Virus record (IMG/VR): IMGVR_UViG_3300050821_013430
Span: 124,001-188,000 of that record
Reading direction: 5' to 3' (one strand)
DNA: 64,000 nt
Each line of letters begins with the position of its first letter. Positions within the stretch are counted from its first letter, which is position 1. The notes under the pieces are model-generated. The model did not search any database. It saw only the letters and a list, made by a program, of their open reading frames with translations, and was not told the origin of the DNA. Below are positions 5,172 through 60,505 of the stretch, piece by piece. Both the position numbers and the translations under genes were made by a program.

Positions 5172-5834
5172 TTACTTTACTTTGGATGGCATCAAAATAT
5201 GCCACGCGTCTCGATTAGAAGCATCTATATCCTCTTCATCGAAGTGATGTAGCTTACCTAAAGAATCGGCATTTGATTCGGCATCTGGATATTTACGCTT
5301 AACCTCTATATTTTTGTCATTAAGATATTTGAGAAAATTAGGATCATCCCAGTCTGCATCACTAGCATCCGACCGATGAATGGCTTTTATTCTTTCAATA
5401 ATTGATGGGATGGGCAAATTTCCACGACTATCTTCTATACAATTATTAGCGGTTGATTTAACCTGAGGACATTTTCTAAAAAGAGCGATTGGCTCTGACG
5501 AATCATTGGCTTTTTTGATTTGCTCTGCGCGCGCTTTTACCTGCTTCCAATAAGCACTAATACCGCTTCTTTCTTGCATATCTTCTACCGCAGCCTCAAC
5601 AGTAGGATATTTCGATTTATTCCCCATGATGGAAGAAATCTGATCATAAAGAGAACGTTGTTCTACATCTTTTCGAGACTCTACGCTGCTTTTTTCTAAA
5701 TTTTTAGCAAAATCGCGAAGCCAAGAAGGTTCTGTTGAAGAATCTTCTACCGAATAAGATTCTCGTGTAATGAGTGGTAAGGTGCGATAAGAGTATTTTT
5801 TCATTGGGATTAAACTTGAAAATTTGGCATCCAA
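5172..5834 (-). CDS. Hypothetical protein (morphogenesis block)
   Basis: 220-aa ORF upstream of the terminase; the true start may be the second Met (MKKYSY). Confidence 0.55.
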   Translation of the reverse strand: MDAKFSSLIPMKKYSYRTLPLITRESYSVEDSSTEPSWLRDFAKNLEKSSVESRKDVEQRSLYDQISSIMGNKSKYPTVEAAVEDMQERSGISAYWKQVKARAEQIKKANDSSEPIALFRKCPQVKSTANNCIEDSRGNLPIPSIIERIKAIHRSDASDADWDDPNFLKYLNDKNIEVKRKYPDAESNADSLGKLHHFDEEDIDASNRDAWHILMPSKVK

Positions 5835-25199: not shown

Positions 25200-26411
25200 T
25201 TATCGGTATTTAGCCGATGACTTCTTGCGTCTACGATCCGTCTTGCCCTTAGCCTTTTGCTTAGGGGTAGAGGACGATATCTCGGCAAGCGCTTCGGGCA
25301 GTTCCTGCCCTGTATTTGACCTAATAAGGCCAAACTTCTTGATGTTGATGGCCGCATTGACATCGCGGTCGTGCTGTGTATGGCATTCCTGACAAGTCCA
25401 AGAACGGACATCCAAGGTCAGGTTTGGGTTTTTCCATCCGCAGCAAGAGCATAACTTGCTGCTTGGATCGAACCGACCGATCTTGATCAGGTTTTTGCCA
25501 TACCACTCAGCCTTGTAGGTTAGGAGACGAACAAACTCTCCCCAACTGACATCGCTGATGTTTTGGGCGAGACAATGGTTTCTCAGCATTCCCGCTACAT
25601 TCAAGTCTTCCAAGATGATCGTTTGGTTCTCACGAATCAGTTTGGTCGAGAGTTTGTGTAGGAAGTCAGAACGCTGGTTTGAGATTGTCTCATACAGTCT
25701 TGCTACTTTGAGATTGGCCTTTCTTCGGTTGTTGGAGCCTTTGACCTTGCGGCTGGCTCGGCGTTGTAAAACATTGAGGCGGTCTAAGAGTTTAGATAGG
25801 AAACGAGGATTTGGTACTTTGGTGCCATCCGAAAGGATGGCAAAGTGAGTAAGCCCGAGGTCAATACCGATGGCACCGTCTAAGATGATGGGAACCTTAG
25901 ACGGTAAGGTTTGGTCATTATCGACCAAGATAGAGATGAAGAACTTCCCTGTGGGCGTTTTCGATACCGTGCAGGTTTTGATCTTGCCATCGAACTTTCG
26001 GTCAAAAACGCAGAAAACCTCTCCGACTTTGGGAAGTTTGACTTTGCTACGCTTGAAATCAACTGAAACTTTCTGTGGATATTGAATTGATCCGCGACCG
26101 TTCTTCTTCTTGAATGTTGGAAACTTACTTTGCTTACGAAAAAAGCGTGTAAAGGCATTATCCAAATTACGTAATGCCATTTGTAATGATTGAGCATTTG
26201 GAACCATCAACCATTCATTAGTTTTCTTTTCTTCGAGTAAGAAGCCATTAGCTAAACAAAAATAACTAAGCGTTTCCCCCGTTTGCTCATAACATTTGAT
26301 CTTAATTTCCAATCCTTTATTATAAATATAGCGCACGCATCCCATCGCCTGGACGAAGTGGTGCTTTTGGGCATCGGAAGGATAGATACGATATTTATAG
26401 GCTTTGAGCAT
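25200..26411 (-). mobile_element. tnpB: TnpB RNA-guided endonuclease (IS200/IS605/IS607 family)
   Basis: KAYKYRIYP N-terminus; RuvC I GIDLG, RuvC II ILEDL, Zn finger CSCC/CQEC, RuvC III DRDVNAA, all intact. Confidence 0.95.
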
Positions 26412-31350: not shown

Positions 31351-32592
31351 TTATTCAACTATCTTGCAGGATTTCATTAAGAAATCTATTGTGTATTCAT
31401 TTTTAATTCTCGCCACTAATGCTTCTAAATAACCTCGTTTATTGATATTTTGCGTGATTTCTGATGCATTTTGCCCCATCGAAGTCAATTGTTGTTGAAT
31501 TGTTTCAATACAATCTGCTTCTGAAAGAGCCGCTTCAGGCTCTACTTCCCGCACGGCCTCTAAAATAAAAGAGGTTTTTACCTGTCTTTCGGCCATATTG
31601 ATATAACTTTCCCTATCAATATCGCTCAAATTATCCCATTTCATTTGAGATGATGCGGCCAAATACTGAGCTTCCATAATAATCAACCATTGCGGCACTT
31701 GAAACTTATGACTTTCATACAATCGAGCCAACAATTGATGTGTAAGTGCATTTTTTTCTAACTTAGCTATATCTTGCGATGCTTGGCCATGAATTGCCGC
31801 TCTCAACTCGTCAAAAGAATTGAATCCTGCTTTCTTGGCCAACTCGTCATTGAGTGGCATTGGCATTACTTTTGAGCCAACCTTGAAAGTAGTTACAAAC
31901 TTCAACGTTTTATTAGCGAGAGAAGGAAGAGCTGAGCCCGGCATTTGGAGAACGATTTCACGAGTTTCACCCAATCGCATTCCCAAAATAGCATCATCTA
32001 ATCCTGGCACCTCACTTTTCCCAACAACTAAAAGTTCATCTTTGACGCAAAGATTGGATAACTTTTCATCCCCATCAAAAGCCTCATAATCAACAATAAT
32101 ATGATCGCCTGATTGGACAAAATCAGTTTCGGTAAATAGAACGCTTTCGGCAAGTCTAATTCTTAATTGTTGCATCTGTTGTTCTGCGGTAATTTCAACC
32201 GTGGTTTCCAACTTAGGCTTAGGTAAATCCATCTCTTTATATTGTTGTAATTCAATTACTGGACGCGTTGAAATTGAAAAATCGCATTCAAACTTACCAT
32301 TAGTAAGTAACGTAGAAGAGAATTCCGGCTGACCAAAGGGTTTGAGATTTTTCTCGAAAAGAGTATTACGATACGCCTCGTCCGCGAGAGCGCGTTTTAC
32401 ACCATCATCAATTTCACGTTTGTAGTACATCTTGATTGCATTGAGAGATGCCTTACCAGGACGGTTTCCTGGTACGGGCGCCCTCTTAAATTGTGAAAGC
32501 ACTTCCAATCTCTTGTCCTCAATTAACGTCTTATCACATTCACAATGTACGGCATACTTACAATATTCTAATTCTTTTAGCGCAATTTGCAT
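31351..32592 (-). CDS. tig: Trigger factor
   Basis: VPGNRPGKAS ribosome-binding-loop variant, FKBP domain (GDHIIVDY...VPGLDDAILGMRLGE), C-terminal helical domain. Confidence 0.85.
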   Translation of the reverse strand: MQIALKELEYCKYAVHCECDKTLIEDKRLEVLSQFKRAPVPGNRPGKASLNAIKMYYKREIDDGVKRALADEAYRNTLFEKNLKPFGQPEFSSTLLTNGKFECDFSISTRPVIELQQYKEMDLPKPKLETTVEITAEQQMQQLRIRLAESVLFTETDFVQSGDHIIVDYEAFDGDEKLSNLCVKDELLVVGKSEVPGLDDAILGMRLGETREIVLQMPGSALPSLANKTLKFVTTFKVGSKVMPMPLNDELAKKAGFNSFDELRAAIHGQASQDIAKLEKNALTHQLLARLYESHKFQVPQWLIIMEAQYLAASSQMKWDNLSDIDRESYINMAERQVKTSFILEAVREVEPEAALSEADCIETIQQQLTSMGQNASEITQNINKRGYLEALVARIKNEYTIDFLMKSCKIVE

Positions 32593-51599: not shown

Positions 51600-51950
51600 C
51601 TAATCAATTATATCAGTACTTTCCTTGATTTCCAATTCAACATTCTTTTTGATCATTCGTTGATAAAAATCACAATCCAATTTCTCTTCATCGGTCGCGC
51701 ATTCTAAATGCCAACCCCTACCATTTTGGCAAAAAATAAAATCTCCCGGCAAATAAACACGATTACATTTTTCACATTTACCACTAAATTTTGATGGAAG
51801 GTAAATGATTTTACCATCATTCCGAGGAGTACATTTTAGTTTGCCATCTCGGATCATTTTGGCGATCTCGACCGCCGCGCCCGGGCTACCGTTCTCGTTG
51901 AAACAGTCCAAATAATAATTGAAAGCGTTTTGAATTTTGTTGTTGATCAT
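51600..51950 (-). CDS. Hypothetical protein with Zn-binding motif
   Basis: SKFSGKCEKC...PGD.I...WHLEC. Confidence 0.55.
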   Translation of the reverse strand: MINNKIQNAFNYYLDCFNENGSPGAAVEIAKMIRDGKLKCTPRNDGKIIYLPSKFSGKCEKCNRVYLPGDFIFCQNGRGWHLECATDEEKLDCDFYQRMIKKNVELEIKESTDIID

Positions 51951-54108: not shown

Positions 54109-54485
54109 ACGACAAAAATACAACACTCAAACTTTTAGCCATTGTCAAAAAACAACAAGCGATGATTGAAAGACTAGCCAATTGGTCAGGGGCGGTTAGT
54201 CCTGCCTCGGTATTACAAGCAAATACTCCTAATAGTGCTGGCAGTATGGCTGGGGCACCAGAAAGCGCTAAACAGCGCATCCAAGCCATGATTATTCCAA
54301 TGAAGTTGGAAATTATTGATTTGGAATGGGGCACACTTCCAAAAATAGTACTGCAAGGCCAAAAAGTAGATTATCCAAGACCGCATGCTGATCAAGATTT
54401 GGTTGCTCGCTTGAAACCACGCCTTTCTACAATAATGGATGACTATCAAAAACACGGTATTGTGCTTAGCATTCAACTTGTTTAG
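54105..54485 (+). CDS. Hypothetical protein with N-terminal module shared with 52964
   Basis: MNDKNTTLKLLAIVKKQQAMIERLAN; AGGAG SD. Confidence 0.6.
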   Translation: MNDKNTTLKLLAIVKKQQAMIERLANWSGAVSPASVLQANTPNSAGSMAGAPESAKQRIQAMIIPMKLEIIDLEWGTLPKIVLQGQKVDYPRPHADQDLVARLKPRLSTIMDDYQKHGIVLSIQLV

Positions 54486-54510
54486 CTTCAAATTCGAACG
54501 GCATTTAATA

Positions 54511-55197
54511 ATGAAAGATGTTTGTACAATCTATATTATACAAAATAATTTCAATGATAAAGTTTATATTGGCCAAACTTGGCAACCCGTCAATAAGCGT
54601 TTCAATGCACATCTAAAAGATAAAAAAGGCTCCTGTCGTAAGTTATTCAATGCTTTCAATAAATACGATCGCGCGAATTTTTATATCGCGGTATTAGCGG
54701 TTTGCAATACACAATCAGAAGCAGATTGGCTGGAAACCTGCTGGATAGATATTTTCGATAGTCGTATAAATGGATACAATCTTAGAAGTGGCGGATCACG
54801 CGGCAAACATTCAGAAGAAAGCAAACAAAAGATGAGCACCGATCGAAAAGGCAAAATGCTTGGAGAAATACATCCAATGTATGGCAAGCATCATACCGAG
54901 GAAACTAAAGCCAGAATGTCAAAGTCCAAAAGAGGAAAGGTTCAATCCGAAAAAAGCAATCATAAAAGATCAGAAGCATTGAAGGGACGATCGATTCTTA
55001 CGGAAATTCAAGTTCAGCAAATCCGGGAAAGCCACATGCAAATGAAAAGTTATCGTACATTAGCTAAAGAATTTGATATATCTATAACTACAGTGGAACG
55101 CGTGGTAAAAAAGAAAAGTCCATATAATAAACCGCTTACTGATGAAGCAAGCATAGCAAGACAAAATAATAGCCAGTCTAAACTTTTTGGTACTTAG
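54511..55197 (+). CDS. GIY-YIG homing endonuclease with NUMOD3 repeats and HTH
   Basis: IYIIQNNFNDKVYIGQT, GYNL, HSEESK/HTEETK; start at MKDVCT. Paralogue of 14030-14866. Confidence 0.88.
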   Translation: MKDVCTIYIIQNNFNDKVYIGQTWQPVNKRFNAHLKDKKGSCRKLFNAFNKYDRANFYIAVLAVCNTQSEADWLETCWIDIFDSRINGYNLRSGGSRGKHSEESKQKMSTDRKGKMLGEIHPMYGKHHTEETKARMSKSKRGKVQSEKSNHKRSEALKGRSILTEIQVQQIRESHMQMKSYRTLAKEFDISITTVERVVKKKSPYNKPLTDEASIARQNNSQSKLFGT

Positions 55198-55720: not shown

Positions 55721-56185
55721 TCAAGAATGTGGCAAGATCAATTTTTCAACATCAATTCCAAAACTTTTCAACAAGGATACATCTAATGCCCAATGAAAGT
55801 GGCTGCGTTGGCTCCAAATCTGAAACTCGTGGTGAATATAATCCTTGGCCTCTTGTTCCGGTATCTCATTGACTTTCATTAGATGGTGTAGGGCGTCCTC
55901 ATATTTCCCGGCGGTCATCGCATAACCCATATGTTTAGTGAGATGGCAGGCGGGACATAAGGCCATCATGCATTTTAGTTTTTGGATATGTCGATGATCA
56001 TCATATGACCAAACTTCGTGGCAATGCAAGGCAACATTGGTAGTGCCGCAAACTTCGCAAGCGTTGTAGGCGTTGCTATAAATTTGCTTTCTAAGTATGT
56101 CCCATTGAGTTTGAGAAAGGATAGCACGAAGACTCTTGCCCCACGCATTTAAAGGGACGAGTTCAAGTATTAGGCGCATCGACAT
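55721..56185 (-). CDS. HNH endonuclease-like protein
   Basis: WDILRK...CEVC...LHCHEVW...LCPACH..KH; AGGAGG SD. Confidence 0.75.
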   Translation of the reverse strand: MSMRLILELVPLNAWGKSLRAILSQTQWDILRKQIYSNAYNACEVCGTTNVALHCHEVWSYDDHRHIQKLKCMMALCPACHLTKHMGYAMTAGKYEDALHHLMKVNEIPEQEAKDYIHHEFQIWSQRSHFHWALDVSLLKSFGIDVEKLILPHS

Positions 56186-56255: not shown

Positions 56256-56332
56256 TGGTGTCCCCGGCGAATTAACAGCTCGCATCATTTTCGTTTTAGG
56301 GACGAACGCTCTTGTTTTTGAGCTACGGGGAC
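56256..56332 (-). tRNA. Atypical tRNA with CUA anticodon (putative amber suppressor)
   Basis: GTCCCCG TA GCTC-AAAAACAA-GAGC G TTCGT-CCCTAAA-ACGAA AATGAT GCGAG-CTGTTAA-TTCGC CGGGGAC A CCA. Full cloverleaf with encoded CCA; anticodon CTA at 56297-56299; C33, no D-loop GG, no TTC. Confidence 0.75.
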
Positions 56333-56337
56333 AAAAT

Positions 56338-56394
56338 TGGTAGGGACGGTAGGACTTTCACCTACGTTAGGGCCTGTTGCGCCCAGTCATCCCC
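56338..56394 (-). ncRNA. 57-nt mini tRNA-like RNA (acceptor stem + one hairpin + T-arm + ACCA)
   Basis: GGGGATG ACT GGGC-GCAACAG-GCCC TAAC GTAGG-TGAAAGT-CCTAC CGTCCCT A CCA. Confidence 0.55.
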
Positions 56395-56399
56395 ATAAG

Positions 56400-56732
56400 T
56401 CATTTGATCCATTCATCTGGCACAATCGCGTGGGATTGACACCATTCATCGAGGTCTTGGTTTTCCATCCACATAAATACACCATAATCTTCACCACCAA
56501 AATACTCATCGATATGAATATCGATATCCTCTAATTTTGCTCCTTTGAGAAACTCAACAACGATATGGGCAGCCCAAATAGCATAGGCTTTGCGCCCATC
56601 TGTAAGTTTTTGGTAGAGGTTTTTAGCGACAGTATGTACATCGCCTAATAAATCTTCTGGATCGACAAACCATCCTTTGGATGTATAGAGATACTTGCCA
56701 GTTTTCCAATTATTGATTACATATTGGGCCAT
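56400..56732 (-). CDS. Hypothetical protein
   Basis: 110-aa ORF directly after the PTH2-like gene. Confidence 0.55.
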   Translation of the reverse strand: MAQYVINNWKTGKYLYTSKGWFVDPEDLLGDVHTVAKNLYQKLTDGRKAYAIWAAHIVVEFLKGAKLEDIDIHIDEYFGGEDYGVFMWMENQDLDEWCQSHAIVPDEWIK

Positions 56733-57068
56733 TTATTTTCCTTTCAATGCCAGTTTCAGATGTTGGCATAATCTTTTGCTTTTCTCACCGGGCGCCAATG
56801 CTATCGCAGTGAGTTCGTCTTCCAAATCCGGCTCTCGAAATAATGTTCGTTCGATGTTTTGTTCTCTGGCTTGTCGAGCAAGCTCCTGCAAGTCAAATTT
56901 ACTTTCAGTTCGCAACACCACAATATAGTTTGAGGTCGTTAGCCAATGCTTTGCACTCTCAGGATGTTCGATCATAAAAGTGGTAGCGGCGTGGCAGGCC
57001 TGAGCGATTTGTAGTCCTGGTGCGAGATCGCCCCGCACCACGATGTAGAGTTTATCAATCTATGACAT
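56733..57068 (-). CDS. PTH2-family (peptidyl-tRNA hydrolase II-like) protein with in-frame UAG at codon 3
   Basis: ATG TCA TAG ATT GAT AAA CTC TAC ATC GTG GTG CGG = MS*IDKLYIVVRGDL; then AQACHA, IVVL, FREPDL..ELTAIAL. The ATG overlaps the upstream TAA (TAATG). Confidence 0.8.
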
Positions 57069-57484
57069 TAGAGGCCCAGCACTTTCAATATCTTGCCAAA
57101 AACGGTATGGGCGATTTGGTTGGTGGCTGGCATGGCAGCAGGTTTAGCAGCGGGCAGTGATTCGTCTTGCAGCCAAGCCTTCACTCTTTCCAAAGTCCAG
57201 ACGCCGGGGACGTTATGGGCCTCGATGATTTGCAATATAAGCCCCGCTGAGGGCTTATTGTCGATCCGACATCTAGGCTCCAAGACCTTGTAGAAAACGC
57301 CTCTAAGGGCTGCGTAAGCGAGCAAATGATGTCTTGATTGACTTCCGACGGAACGCTTGATAGAGCAAAGCGACCAAGCCTTCTCATCCTTTTTGGCTTT
57401 TTTGATTTGGGATCGGAGTTGTTGAGACTTGTCCGAGAGTCCGTTGATTTTTGCTACTAAAAAATGTCTATAATATTTATTCAT
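57068..57484 (-). CDS. Hypothetical protein (RHHLLAYAALRG motif), first gated gene of the amber operon
   Basis: 138 aa; AAGGAG SD 7 nt upstream. Confidence 0.7.
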   Translation of the reverse strand: MNKYYRHFLVAKINGLSDKSQQLRSQIKKAKKDEKAWSLCSIKRSVGSQSRHHLLAYAALRGVFYKVLEPRCRIDNKPSAGLILQIIEAHNVPGVWTLERVKAWLQDESLPAAKPAAMPATNQIAHTVFGKILKVLGL

Positions 57485-57569
57485 TAAGTTTCTCCTTGTA
57501 AAATTGTTTGGTGAATTGGATTGAAAGAAGCCAATCCCAAGGAGGATCGCGCGAACGAATAGTAATCTA
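57477..57569 (-). promoter_or_regulatory. Putative amber-readthrough translational attenuator (UAG + RDPPW + anti-SD/SD stem)
   Basis: After the TAG the frame stays open as ITIRSRDPPWDWLLSIQFTKQFYKEKLNE-TAA. CTCCTTG (57544-57538) is complementary to the SD CAAGGAG (57498-57492). Inner hairpin GGATTG/CAATCC. Confidence 0.65.
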
Positions 57570-57764
57570 CGAATAGGTCATTAGTTCGGTTTCTGAAATT
57601 TCGGTCAAAAATTCTTCATTAGTGGTTTTGATTTTATAGGTAGGCACACCATTGATGAATACATTATCAAAACCTATAATAGTGGCAGCCACTTCGTAAT
57701 CACCAACCCAGGGATTGTATCTTTGGATTTTTACTCTTTGTCCAATTGAGAATTTAGCCTTCAT
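57567..57764 (-). CDS. Small KOW/SH3-like protein that also serves as the leader ORF ending MTYS-UAG
   Basis: KFSIGQRVKI...YKIK...ISETEL; GGATATA motif 9 nt upstream. Confidence 0.6.
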   Translation of the reverse strand: MKAKFSIGQRVKIQRYNPWVGDYEVAATIIGFDNVFINGVPTYKIKTTNEEFLTEISETELMTYS

Positions 57765-57781
57765 CTCTAACTATATATCCT

Positions 57782-59740: not shown

Positions 59741-60505
59741 TCAGTGTTTTTTGATGATATCTTGGAGAAATTCCTTTTCCGAAGTGAAAATCGGAACATC
59801 GGTATTTAGAGCCCAACGCTCTTTTACAATATCCTCGCCGTTGTAATTGATCGTCTCCGGGCGTCGGTAGCACACTACGCCTCTCCTAAATTCGACCGGA
59901 TACTCATAGAAATCAATTCCCGCTTCTTCTTTCAATAGTTTGATCTTCTCTTCCAAGGAAGTATCCATCAGCATCTCTTCGATTTCGTGTTTCCTATACT
60001 TCTTGATCAATTCATAGAAACAAGCCAGCCTAACTGCAATTTGGTGGGCTCGTTGCTGATGATATACCATAACATTTACTGCCTCAGTAAGATTAGGGAC
60101 GGTAAAAATCTTGCTCAAAAAGATGGGGTCGCCCGACAAATTTACTTCCAATTCTGCTGCAGCATCATTGAAATGGAGCGTGGCAAGAGAAGAAGCGGCA
60201 GAAATAATTTTGGAAACGGAATTATCATACCAAGGCTGAGTATCCAAAGTTTGATCGTTTCTTACAATTATTGTAATTTCATCGTTGAACGAATAAGCAA
60301 AAACTGCTCCCTCAATTTCTTGAACGAGATCGGCCATCGTGGCATAGAGGCATTGTCCAAGTTCCAAAGAAAATGGTTTTGGTAGCAAGGAAGTGATCTT
60401 GCTGAAATTTCTTCCGTTGAGATTGATGATCAGCGGCACTCGGGGCATCAGTCTCGGGTCGCAAATATCCTCATAACTTGTAATTCTGGCTTTCAGTGGC
60501 TGCAT
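59741..60505 (-). CDS. Thg1-like protein (tRNA-His guanylyltransferase / 3'-5' polymerase family)
   Basis: YE...P.II.LNGRNFS.T...KPF, YSFNDEI, SKIISAASS, FRRGV. Confidence 0.85.
   Translation of the reverse strand: MQPLKARITSYEDICDPRLMPRVPLIINLNGRNFSKITSLLPKPFSLELGQCLYATMADLVQEIEGAVFAYSFNDEITIIVRNDQTLDTQPWYDNSVSKIISAASSLATLHFNDAAAELEVNLSGDPIFLSKIFTVPNLTEAVNVMVYHQQRAHQIAVRLACFYELIKKYRKHEIEEMLMDTSLEEKIKLLKEEAGIDFYEYPVEFRRGVVCYRRPETINYNGEDIVKERWALNTDVPIFTSEKEFLQDIIKKH

Follow-up and report, generated by a model that had tools for sequence, protein, structure and literature searches.

A candidate translation-control module in a jumbo phage, with early in-frame UAG codons, a PTH2-like gene, an arrest-type leader and a CUA tRNA

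The DNA considered here, a stretch of 64,000 nucleotides (nt) from IMG/VR virus record IMGVR_UViG_3300050821_013430 (positions 124,001 to 188,000; hereafter the window, with coordinates counted from its first nucleotide), is part of a jumbo phage genome. The open reading frame (ORF) map shows densely packed genes, nearly all of them on the minus strand, and the gene content includes a portal protein, a large terminase, UvsX, SbcC, a topoisomerase, a polymerase of dnaE size, a trigger-factor homologue, TnpB, and a Thg1-like gene. In this study, we have analyzed a string of minus-strand genes between 57780 and 56256 in which one UAG codon closes a leader ORF, a second stands at the very start of a gene of the PTH2 family, and the last element is a candidate tRNA gene with the anticodon CUA. 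The initial annotation had read this string as one operon that is switched on only when UAG is read through; when checked against the sequence and the ORF map, every element that it had listed was found where it had been placed. We refer to an early in-frame stop codon of this kind as a gate. The features are as follows.

57771-57780, minus strand: GGATATATAG motif, whose TATATA core stops 7 nt ahead of the leader ATG
57570-57764, minus strand: leader ORF of 65 sense codons ending in M-T-Y-S (from the sequence; no Pfam match)
57567-57569, minus strand: UAG gate 1, which closes the leader ORF, in the context ATG ACC TAT TCG TAG ATT
57540-57566, minus strand: readthrough segment I-T-I-R-S-R-D-P-P, in the frame behind the leader stop
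57540-57551, minus strand: RDPP arrest-type motif, within the readthrough segment
57538-57544, minus strand: CUCCUUG, anti-Shine-Dalgarno sequence in the predicted fold, overlapping the Pro-Pro codons
57477-57539, minus strand: remaining leader with an internal hairpin, between the arrest motif and the start of the 138-amino-acid gene
57492-57497, minus strand: AAGGAG, Shine-Dalgarno sequence of the 138-amino-acid gene
57477-57479, minus strand: TAA of the readthrough frame, overlapping the start of the 138-amino-acid gene
57068-57484, minus strand: gene for a protein of 138 amino acids (p138 family), from the ORF map
57060-57068, minus strand: PTH2 start ATG (57066-57068, overlapping the TAA of p138), TCA, and the TAG of UAG gate 2 (57060-57062); the ATT that follows is at 57057-57059
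56733-57059, minus strand: PTH2-family coding sequence behind the gate, 108 codons and a stop (Pfam PF01981)
56400-56732, minus strand: gene for a protein of 110 amino acids, its ATG directly after the PTH2 stop (TAAATG)
56338-56394, minus strand: 57-nt "mini tRNA-like" element with a 7-bp acceptor-like stem, two hairpins, and an ACCA end; unsupported (see below)
56256-56332, minus strand: CUA cloverleaf tRNA gene, 77 nt, with its anticodon at 56297-56299 and an encoded ACCA end

Over the module, two IMG/VR contigs from different samples, one of 473 kb and the other of 221 kb, match the window at 100% identity; the window may itself have been taken from one of them, so these amount to at most two independent assemblies. 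Comparison of the module DNA with GenBank phages gave no similarity match, and a scan of genome contigs matched only two contigs of metagenome bins, neither of them informative on the host.

By profile comparison, the product of the gene behind gate 2 can be placed in the PTH2 family as a peptidyl-tRNA-hydrolase-like protein. Its residues 3 to 103 match positions 2 to 114 of the 115 positions of PF01981 (E value, 9.6e-13; 48.8 bits against a cut-off of 23), and a profile of the PTH2 family matches the solved Pth2 structures 2zv3 (E value, 5.7e-11), 1q7s (human Bit1), 1wn2, 1rzw, and 1rlk, with the K-L-Y strand aligning with the first strand of these proteins. We take the catalytic residues of Pth2 to be three: the Lys of a G-K motif that follows the first strand and, toward the C-terminal part, one Asp and one Thr. 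Across 18 PTH2-like sequences, D78 and T84 do not vary; in the phage subfamily the site aligned to the canonical K-G-K reads P-G-(L/Y/M), with a two-residue deletion. Gene callers place the start of the gene at a GTG, and many database entries begin V-V-R or M-V-R, as if truncated. Because the Pfam match begins at the third residue after the TAG, a GTG start would remove the first beta-strand, and it appears that annotation currently mis-starts these genes.

Relatives of the PTH2-like protein were collected by protein searches (97%, 84%, and 55% identity and lower), and the DNA of their contigs was then inspected; in addition, a scan of IMG/VR with the family alignment yielded 80 loci, many of them on contigs of 200 to 675 kb. 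A ribosome-binding site, an ATG, 1 to 3 sense codons, and a TAG are present in L007, L009, L011, L012, L013-L017, and L018, followed by 1 to 4 codons and then (D)K-L-Y-(I/V)-(V/I)-(V/T)-R. Across the IMG/VR loci, an ATG with 1 to 6 sense codons and a TAG was found in 54 of the 80 (44 unique), and none of these has a further ATG on the way from the TAG to the conserved strand. A TAA takes its place clearly in L021 (ATG GCT TAA), and L065 looks similar; other loci have ordinary starts, the ungated homologues showing an N terminus of the form M-x(2-10)-K-L-Y. The TAG gate also occurs in the GenBank huge-phage genomes LR756500, LR756501 (735 kb), and LR745206, and the TAG at codon 3 or 4 is retained down to approximately 40% protein identity. 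The initial annotation had allowed that homologues might carry sense codons or unrelated sequence at this position; instead, the TAG proved to be conserved.

The view that the stops are sequencing or assembly errors, or private nonsense mutations in a dying gene, has in its favor only the general expectation that an early stop will usually reflect an error or a pseudogene. That view is refuted by the comparative data, namely the two identical assemblies, the TAG in 44 unique PTH2 lineages, and a leader stop conserved in 15 of 17 leaders, and we give it practically no credence.

The segment behind the TAG is apparently translated and under protein-level selection. In 35 unique genes, K, L, and Y, which in the window lie upstream of the first GTG, are themselves invariant, and their codons vary purely synonymously: the Lys codon is AAG in 18 and AAA in 17, all six Leu codons are used, and the Tyr codon is TAT in 27 and TAC in 8. 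In 27 of these genes, one has to go past the invariant Tyr, sometimes by more than 40 codons, before meeting an ATG, GTG, or TTG downstream of the TAG. Since K-L-Y is conserved with synonymous variation and usually has no start codon ahead of it behind the gate, translation must, to judge from this pattern, pass through the TAG.

Alternatively, ATG-NNN-TAG could be a two-codon ORF after which PTH2 translation begins again at a downstream non-AUG codon or GTG, with the mini-ORF either tying translation to that of the preceding gene or drawing off ribosomes. Such re-initiation would suit the overlap of the PTH2 ATG with the stop of the upstream gene (TAATG or ATGA), which is a classical coupling arrangement, as well as the GTG chosen by gene callers and the in-frame ATG that follows the TAG by 6 to 7 codons in a neighboring family of approximately 190 amino acids, described below. 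Two-codon minigenes also provoke peptidyl-tRNA drop-off, which is relieved by Pth, and the AUG-XXX-stop ORFs of the lambda bar minigenes, which are toxic decoys rather than gene starts, have effects that depend on peptidyl-tRNA hydrolase. Nevertheless, we regard re-initiation as very unlikely for PTH2: no conserved start codon separates the TAG from K-L-Y, K-L-Y is constrained as the first strand of Pth2 would be, and both the tRNA linkage and the matching of stop type to anticodon would be left unexplained.

According to the initial annotation, both UAGs of the window share the context TAG-ATT. Among relatives, this stands only in a broader form. The codon after the gate is no conserved start codon and is not always ATT (GTT, AAC, GTA, GGT, and others occur), but a purine directly follows the TAG in 47 of 49 unique contexts (A, 34; G, 13; C, 2; T, 0). 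At the true terminal stops of the window, T is the commonest next base. In Escherichia coli, a purine after UAG favors suppression, and U favors termination. A search of the window for further ATG-N-TAG gates gave none that was convincing; TAA and TGA, taken as controls, yielded equal counts.

A second, longer PTH2-like paralogue of approximately 245 codons, with the pattern I-x-x-K-L-I-(I/V)-I-T-R-R-D-L, lies upstream of PTH2 in L038, L049, L051, and L075. It too starts with a short ATG-led stretch ending in TAG, which is ATG ACT TAG in three loci and ATG TAG in L075.

The element at the 3' end of the module folds at minimum energy into a perfect cloverleaf (z score, -3.6) with a 7-nt anticodon loop and CUA at positions 34 to 36. 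Across the window, L007, L009, and L013, stem positions are paired in 83 of 84 cases, and 13 of the 21 stem pairs have changed on both sides; between the window and L007, three compensatory pairs fall in the anticodon stem and one in the T stem. A second tRNA-like stretch in L011 could not be folded with a clean anticodon arm and was excluded from this comparison. The compensatory changes argue that the CUA element is a selected structured RNA, and it is only for its cloverleaf fold and for these changes in relatives that we call it a tRNA; it is presumed to be an amber suppressor. Its sequence suggests that it belongs to a diverged branch. The anticodon loop reads CCCUAAA, the D loop AAAAACAA, and the T loop CUGUUAA, while the CUA tRNAs of most relatives are canonical, with GG in the D loop and GTTCGAATC as the T loop; C33 recurs in the otherwise canonical CUA tRNAs of L036, L059, and L091. 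The 57-nt mini tRNA-like RNA of the initial annotation fared less well: it folds as drawn, but the fold is weak (z score, -1.9), and no locus has a counterpart, including the closest, L007.

That a CUA tRNA might co-occur with gated PTH2 genes had been suggested as a check on the initial annotation, and it does. A CUA tRNA called by ARAGORN lies directly downstream of PTH2 in L009, L011, L012, and L013. On the same strand and within 3 kb, 37 of the 44 unique TAG-gated loci have one, in comparison with 5 of 18 ungated loci (Fisher P value of 4e-5, a test that is uncorrected for phylogeny and therefore overstates the independence of related loci). The type of stop also tracks the anticodon, since the TAA gate of L021 adjoins a UUA tRNA and L073, which has a TGA leader, carries two UCA tRNAs. 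Pairing between the anticodon loop and the mRNA that extends beyond the codon was looked for by eye, and none was seen.

Many relatives carry two different tandem CUA tRNAs approximately 80 nt apart (L024, L025, L032, L059, L091, and L100; in L011, at 5308-5461).

The two TAGs might also be ordinary sense codons of a phage in which TAG is reassigned, as in code 15, so that they would be two among many and the CUA tRNA would serve them all. Recoded phages with CUA suppressor tRNAs are well documented, huge phages included (bioRxiv 10.1101/2021.08.26.457843; PMC13037316); only 64 kb of this genome was examined, and some relatives of low G+C content may well be recoded. Within these 64 kb, however, the statement of the initial annotation that TAG is otherwise an ordinary stop and that long genes lack an internal TAG holds. 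There is no in-frame TAG in the genes for the portal protein, large terminase, dnaE (1178 amino acids), topoisomerase, SbcC, UvsX, and others; TAG closes 13 of the 77 long ORFs; and ORFs joined by TAG, at 7, are not in excess of those joined by TAA (13) or TGA (12). Treating TAG, TAA, or TGA as sense gives no special gain in coding density for TAG in the loci, a comparison that is not discriminating, and back-up stops follow terminal TAGs at a median of 6 codons versus 9, in a few genes only. Furthermore, random placement would not put a TAG at codon 3 or 4 in 44 lineages or 5 to 8 codons before RxPP. Ordinary recoding is distinctly improbable as an explanation. One TAG-joined pair at 51600 was considered as a recoded gene and rejected, because it consists of two ordinary adjacent genes.

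The leader UAG turned out to differ from the gate that had been proposed. As a conserved stop it stands, being found in 15 of 17 unique leaders (TAG in 13, TGA in 2), but it is not a gate of simple readthrough into the next gene; behind it lies a conserved RxPP motif whose codons double as an anti-Shine-Dalgarno sequence. The layout recurs upstream of p138 homologues as a GGATATATA-type motif that ends 7 nt before the ATG, a mini-ORF, a stop, a CCTCC box, a hairpin, a Shine-Dalgarno sequence, and the gene start. In most relatives the mini-ORF has 3 to 7 codons and ends in (Y/F)-(L/S); it is stretched to 65 codons in the window and in L007, whose leader ORF is 88% identical to that of the window. 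CCTCC encodes Pro-Pro after Arg-(Ala/Gly/Asp) in 17 of 17 unique leaders, and in 15 of them R-x-P-P lies 5 to 8 codons behind the stop of an AUG-started mini-ORF, such that the stop interrupts the ORF between its start codon and the motif; the other two also have RGPP. The motif is RDPP in the window and L018, RGPP in 10 leaders, and RAPP in 5. In the window the frame reads M-T-Y-S, stop, I-T-I-R-S-R-D-P-P-W, and in the long ORFs of the window RxPP was observed 0 times, with approximately 1.6 expected. The leaders of L082 and L090 misfit this scheme, since RGPP is in another frame than the nearest mini-ORF (CTC TGA A). In L068 and L073, which are of higher G+C content, the leader mini-ORF stop is TGA, and PTH2 starts are ordinary.

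RAPP and RGPP are published ribosome-arrest motifs that cause robust arrest, with no relief by EF-P; proteomes avoid them, and regulatory leaders employ them to control the genes that follow; RxPP alone has been reported to be sufficient for arrest, which upstream residues modulate (PMC12992588, PMC10951233). In the window, the minimum-energy fold pairs the Pro-Pro codons (57538-57544) with the Shine-Dalgarno sequence (57492-57498), and such CCUCC pairing is predicted in 4 of 5 folds (window, L009, L012, and L018); the z scores of the folds range from -1.3 to -4.3. The readthrough frame of the window ends 5 nt past the start of p138, and in L009, L018, L030, and L073 it ends in an ATGA overlap with the downstream start.

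A consensus scan also found a weak terminator-like hairpin at 57532-57549 (minus strand), with GAUCC/GGAUU and a U-rich tail, that overlaps the Pro-Pro codons; a version of the leader switch that acts by transcription attenuation is conceivable.

The p138 protein is presumed, from its place in the layout, to be the output of the leader switch. Homologues adjoin PTH2 in 32 loci, and an AlphaFold model (predicted local distance difference test score, 85) shows a long helical hairpin; neither a Foldseek comparison with PDB structures nor a profile search of PDB sequences gave anything but coiled-coil noise, and a tblastn search of phages gave no match. The 110-amino-acid protein was found only in the closest relative (L007, L008; 90% identity), and its gene is probably translationally coupled to PTH2.

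In many relatives, although not in the window, a protein of approximately 190 amino acids is encoded between p138 and PTH2; it may be HD-like, as its H...HDxGKP motif suggests. Its gene is preceded in 20 of 21 unique loci by ATG, 1 to 6 codons, and TAG, then six codons (N-x-L-I-x-D) and an in-frame ATG, and because of that ATG, 6 to 7 codons behind the TAG, the gating of this gene is ambiguous. In the cultured Ralstonia phage RsoM2USA, the homologue is preceded by ATG AAA TCG TAG. In Serratia phage BF (gp515/gp514; L108 1462-2028), codon 47 of the homologue is an in-frame TAG, and the annotation divides it into two coding sequences; the same split is seen in GAP32, CBB, fHe-Yen9-04, and the Erwinia pEa_SNUABM phages (Rak2-like). 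Pfam and PHROGs searches with the 65-, 110-, 138-, 154-, and approximately 190-amino-acid proteins of these loci gave nothing significant.

The GGATATATAG motif precedes the leader ATG by the same 7 nt in L007, L018, L022, L030, and L047, and it also stands ahead of the gated 190-amino-acid gene in L025, L027, L028, L032, and L037. It is possibly the -10 element of a leaderless or near-leaderless transcript. A sigma-70 consensus scan did not call it, and as a window-wide promoter motif it shows no enrichment elsewhere in the window. Two other candidate motifs were examined. TTCGTAGATT has one exact copy in the window, with no enrichment, and TAGATT was rejected as a -10 box, because what is conserved is the position of the gate relative to the coding frame and not to a transcript start.

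The initial annotation had considered impaired termination by release factor 1 (RF1), for example through a host defense, as a possible trigger and had cast the PTH2-like protein as a rescue factor; both ideas are speculative. In its strongest form, this would make the gates sensors of UAG termination efficiency rather than of the phage tRNA: with RF1 scarce or inhibited, through host shut-off, a defense system, or a phage factor, UAG would be read by near-cognate tRNAs, and a ribosome pausing at or passing the leader UAG would free the Shine-Dalgarno sequence, with the PTH2-like protein acting in a loop like that of RF2 regulation. A stop codon that senses the level of a release factor is an established principle, as in the autoregulation of prfB, in which an early in-frame stop senses the decoding state; there, a +1 frameshift at codon 26 senses the gene's own product, whereas the module has no conserved frameshift signal. 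The leader architecture would respond to anything that passes ribosomes through the stop, 7 of the 44 gated loci have no detectable CUA tRNA, and the tRNA of the window looks suboptimal. Against this, a tRNA with the matching anticodon adjoins the gate in the other 37, and the anticodon changes with the type of stop; in the commonest leaders, CCUCC lies 15 nt past the stop, a distance at which the footprint of a terminating ribosome is ending or has already ended; and a conserved in-frame RxPP makes sense only if the ribosome reads on. As a full account, sensing of RF1 seems unlikely to us, and it is in part compatible with a role for the tRNA: because suppression competes with termination, the level of RF1 must influence the gate, and the earlier idea is a modifier rather than an excluded rival.

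We consider it likely that these elements form a translation-control module in which the phage's own CUA suppressor tRNA gates UAG-bearing targets and in which an arrest-peptide sensor is added to one of them. The tRNA would be the activator, and the UAGs would sit in the targets at places where their cost is near zero. In the off state, RF1 would terminate at AUG-UCA-UAG and release only a dipeptide; in the on state, the CUA tRNA would decode the UAG, insert an amino acid there, and give the full enzyme, probably together with the coupled 110-amino-acid protein. For p138, a readthrough ribosome would translate seven codons past the leader UAG to R-D-P-P and stall. The CCUCCU Pro codons are the predicted anti-Shine-Dalgarno strand, which is otherwise paired with the AAGGAG of p138, and a ribosome stalled on that strand is proposed to leave the p138 ribosome-binding site free; a ribosome that escapes the stall would terminate on the p138 start codon. 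Because the tRNA closes the same gene string at its 3' end, the arrangement would constitute a coherent feed-forward AND gate, provided that the string is cotranscribed: protein would be made only if the operon is transcribed and the tRNA is processed, charged, and able to outcompete RF1. The off state would be very cheap, because termination releases only a di- or tetrapeptide. Our guess is that the module serves the upkeep of tRNAs and ribosomes, through PTH2 and a nearby Thg1-like protein, once suppression is active.

Several observations weigh against this scheme. ARAGORN called 0 tRNA genes in the window, and Rfam gave no tRNA match to the CUA element up to an E value of 10, so that the module's own tRNA may decode poorly or act otherwise; it is noncanonical in having C33 in place of U33 and in lacking G18-G19 and T54-Psi55-C56. 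The linkage of gate and tRNA is strong but not absolute, given the seven gated loci without a CUA tRNA within 3 kb and the five ungated loci with one, although the window is itself among these seven, its cloverleaf being invisible to ARAGORN. Because the loci are related by descent, independent events are fewer than the counts suggest. In the closest relative, L007, CCUCC does not pair with the Shine-Dalgarno sequence, and a second TAG stands right behind RGPP. The motif of the window is RDPP rather than the tested RAPP or RGPP, the nascent chain of relatives would be only approximately 12 residues long, and residues upstream of RxPP can abolish arrest (PMC10951233). Lastly, the recoding checks cover 64 kb of a genome of 221 to 473 kb, and recoded genes may lie elsewhere in it.

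Each ingredient of the module is known separately. A full-text search of the literature for work on phages that links either PTH2 or arrest leaders to suppressor tRNAs, or to stop codons early in the frame, returned none. A close precedent lies in recoded phages (crAss-like, Lak, Jade, Agate, and others), for which it has been proposed that a phage suppressor tRNA makes the translation of certain genes conditional and thereby times their expression; the "code-change" genes are clustered (Borges et al., bioRxiv 10.1101/2021.08.26.457843). There, structural and lysis genes carry scattered in-frame stops by the dozens to hundreds, and the stop codon concerned seldom ends a gene. In the module, TAG is still a terminator, only two or three genes beside the tRNA are concerned, the stop is at codon 3 or 4 or in a leader, and the targets are a PTH2-like enzyme and small proteins rather than lysis genes; Borges et al. 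mention no hydrolase.

The leader resembles the arrest leaders ApdA, ApdP, and ApcA (and SecM, with RAGP), which also have a conserved R-x-P-P near the C terminus of a small upstream ORF and whose downstream ribosome-binding site is masked by a structure that would be opened by a stalled ribosome, as is predicted for the phage leader in four of the five folds. Those four are monitoring substrates with signal or transmembrane segments, and their arrest is released by secretion or membrane insertion. In the phage leader, by contrast, an in-frame stop splits the start codon from the motif, and only readthrough ribosomes would reach RxPP; in most relatives the peptide is approximately 12 residues long, the predicted anti-Shine-Dalgarno strand consists of the Pro-Pro codons themselves, and arrest is predicted. 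If this is true, the leader would be the first natural arrest peptide with stop-codon decoding as its input. The synthetic "leak dampener" (PMC7969014), engineered in E. coli, combines early amber codons with a coinduced suppressor tRNA in an AND gate with a very low off state; the phage module, natural and conserved and with its added arrest-peptide branch, would be its natural counterpart, and readthrough would be a new kind of input to an arrest leader.

Iyer et al. (2021; PMC7824862) note PTH2 and Thg1 in jumbo phages and mention neither suppressor tRNAs nor early stops. The same PTH2 subfamily occurs among tRNA genes in cluster C mycobacteriophages (Myrna gp84 and Catera gp153; 44 to 50% identity over 97% of the protein), where the genes have an ordinary ATG 7 codons before K-L-Y and no gate. 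XacN1 is a cultured, standard-code Xanthomonas jumbo phage with two CUA tRNAs; its authors considered readthrough of all 18 terminal TAGs and found no target (PMC5852040). XacN1 ORF364 (L107; AP018399 243732-244595) is a fusion of the 190-amino-acid family to the phage PTH2 subfamily and is preceded in frame by ATG AAG TAG. It differs from the module in that an ATG follows the TAG by four codons, which makes the gating ambiguous, and in that the tRNAs lie in terminal repeats, far from ORF364; the other PTH2 gene of XacN1 (ORF295) is of the canonical type and ungated. Those authors searched behind terminal stops (PMC5852040), and the module gives a concrete candidate answer to the question of their missing tRNA targets.

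It can be envisioned that many standard-code jumbo phages carry a self-contained "suppression regulon," in which a suppressor tRNA, rather than changing the genetic code, acts in trans as the translational activator of a few neighboring genes (PTH2-like, HD-like 190-amino-acid, and p138), either through AUG-N(1-3)-UAG gates or through a stop-interrupted RxPP leader that senses the ratio of suppressor tRNA to RF1; we judge the case for this generalization to be evenly balanced. If true, it would account for the "orphan" suppressor tRNAs seen in XacN1 and phages like it, and it would direct the search for their possible targets to the extreme 5' ends of genes, where gene callers silently shift the start downstream. 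It would also link peptidyl-tRNA hydrolase to nonsense suppression in phages, a hint that suppression carries a cost for the phage to manage.

Two further genes are conserved in the neighborhood of the module.

55721-56185, minus strand: p154 family gene, 154 amino acids, Cys/His-rich, ungated, downstream of the tRNA
59741-60505, minus strand: Thg1-like gene (3'-5' nucleotide addition, tRNA 5'-end repair or maturation; Pfam Thg1, E value of 1.8e-18)

Homologues of p154 are found in 28 loci as a conserved neighbor downstream of the suppressor tRNA, with no gate upstream and with the pattern CxxC ... HCH ... CPACH; a weak Pfam hint of HNH was obtained for the L025 homologue only. The Thg1-like gene is kept approximately 2 to 3 kb upstream of the module in relatives (L007, 1773-2537; L009, 2507-3304). 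On the opposite strand, the module is flanked by homing-endonuclease genes of the GIY-YIG/NUMOD3 type, at 54439-55197 (plus strand) in the window and at 1387-2184 and 6178-7047 in L009. Elsewhere in the window, a TnpB / OrfB_IS605 gene with a Cas12f-like TNB domain (25200-26411, minus strand) adjoins the gene of dnaE size, and the trigger-factor homologue (31351-32592, minus strand; Pfam Trigger_N, 1.4e-19, and Trigger_C, 5.6e-10) is a further translation-associated function of this phage.

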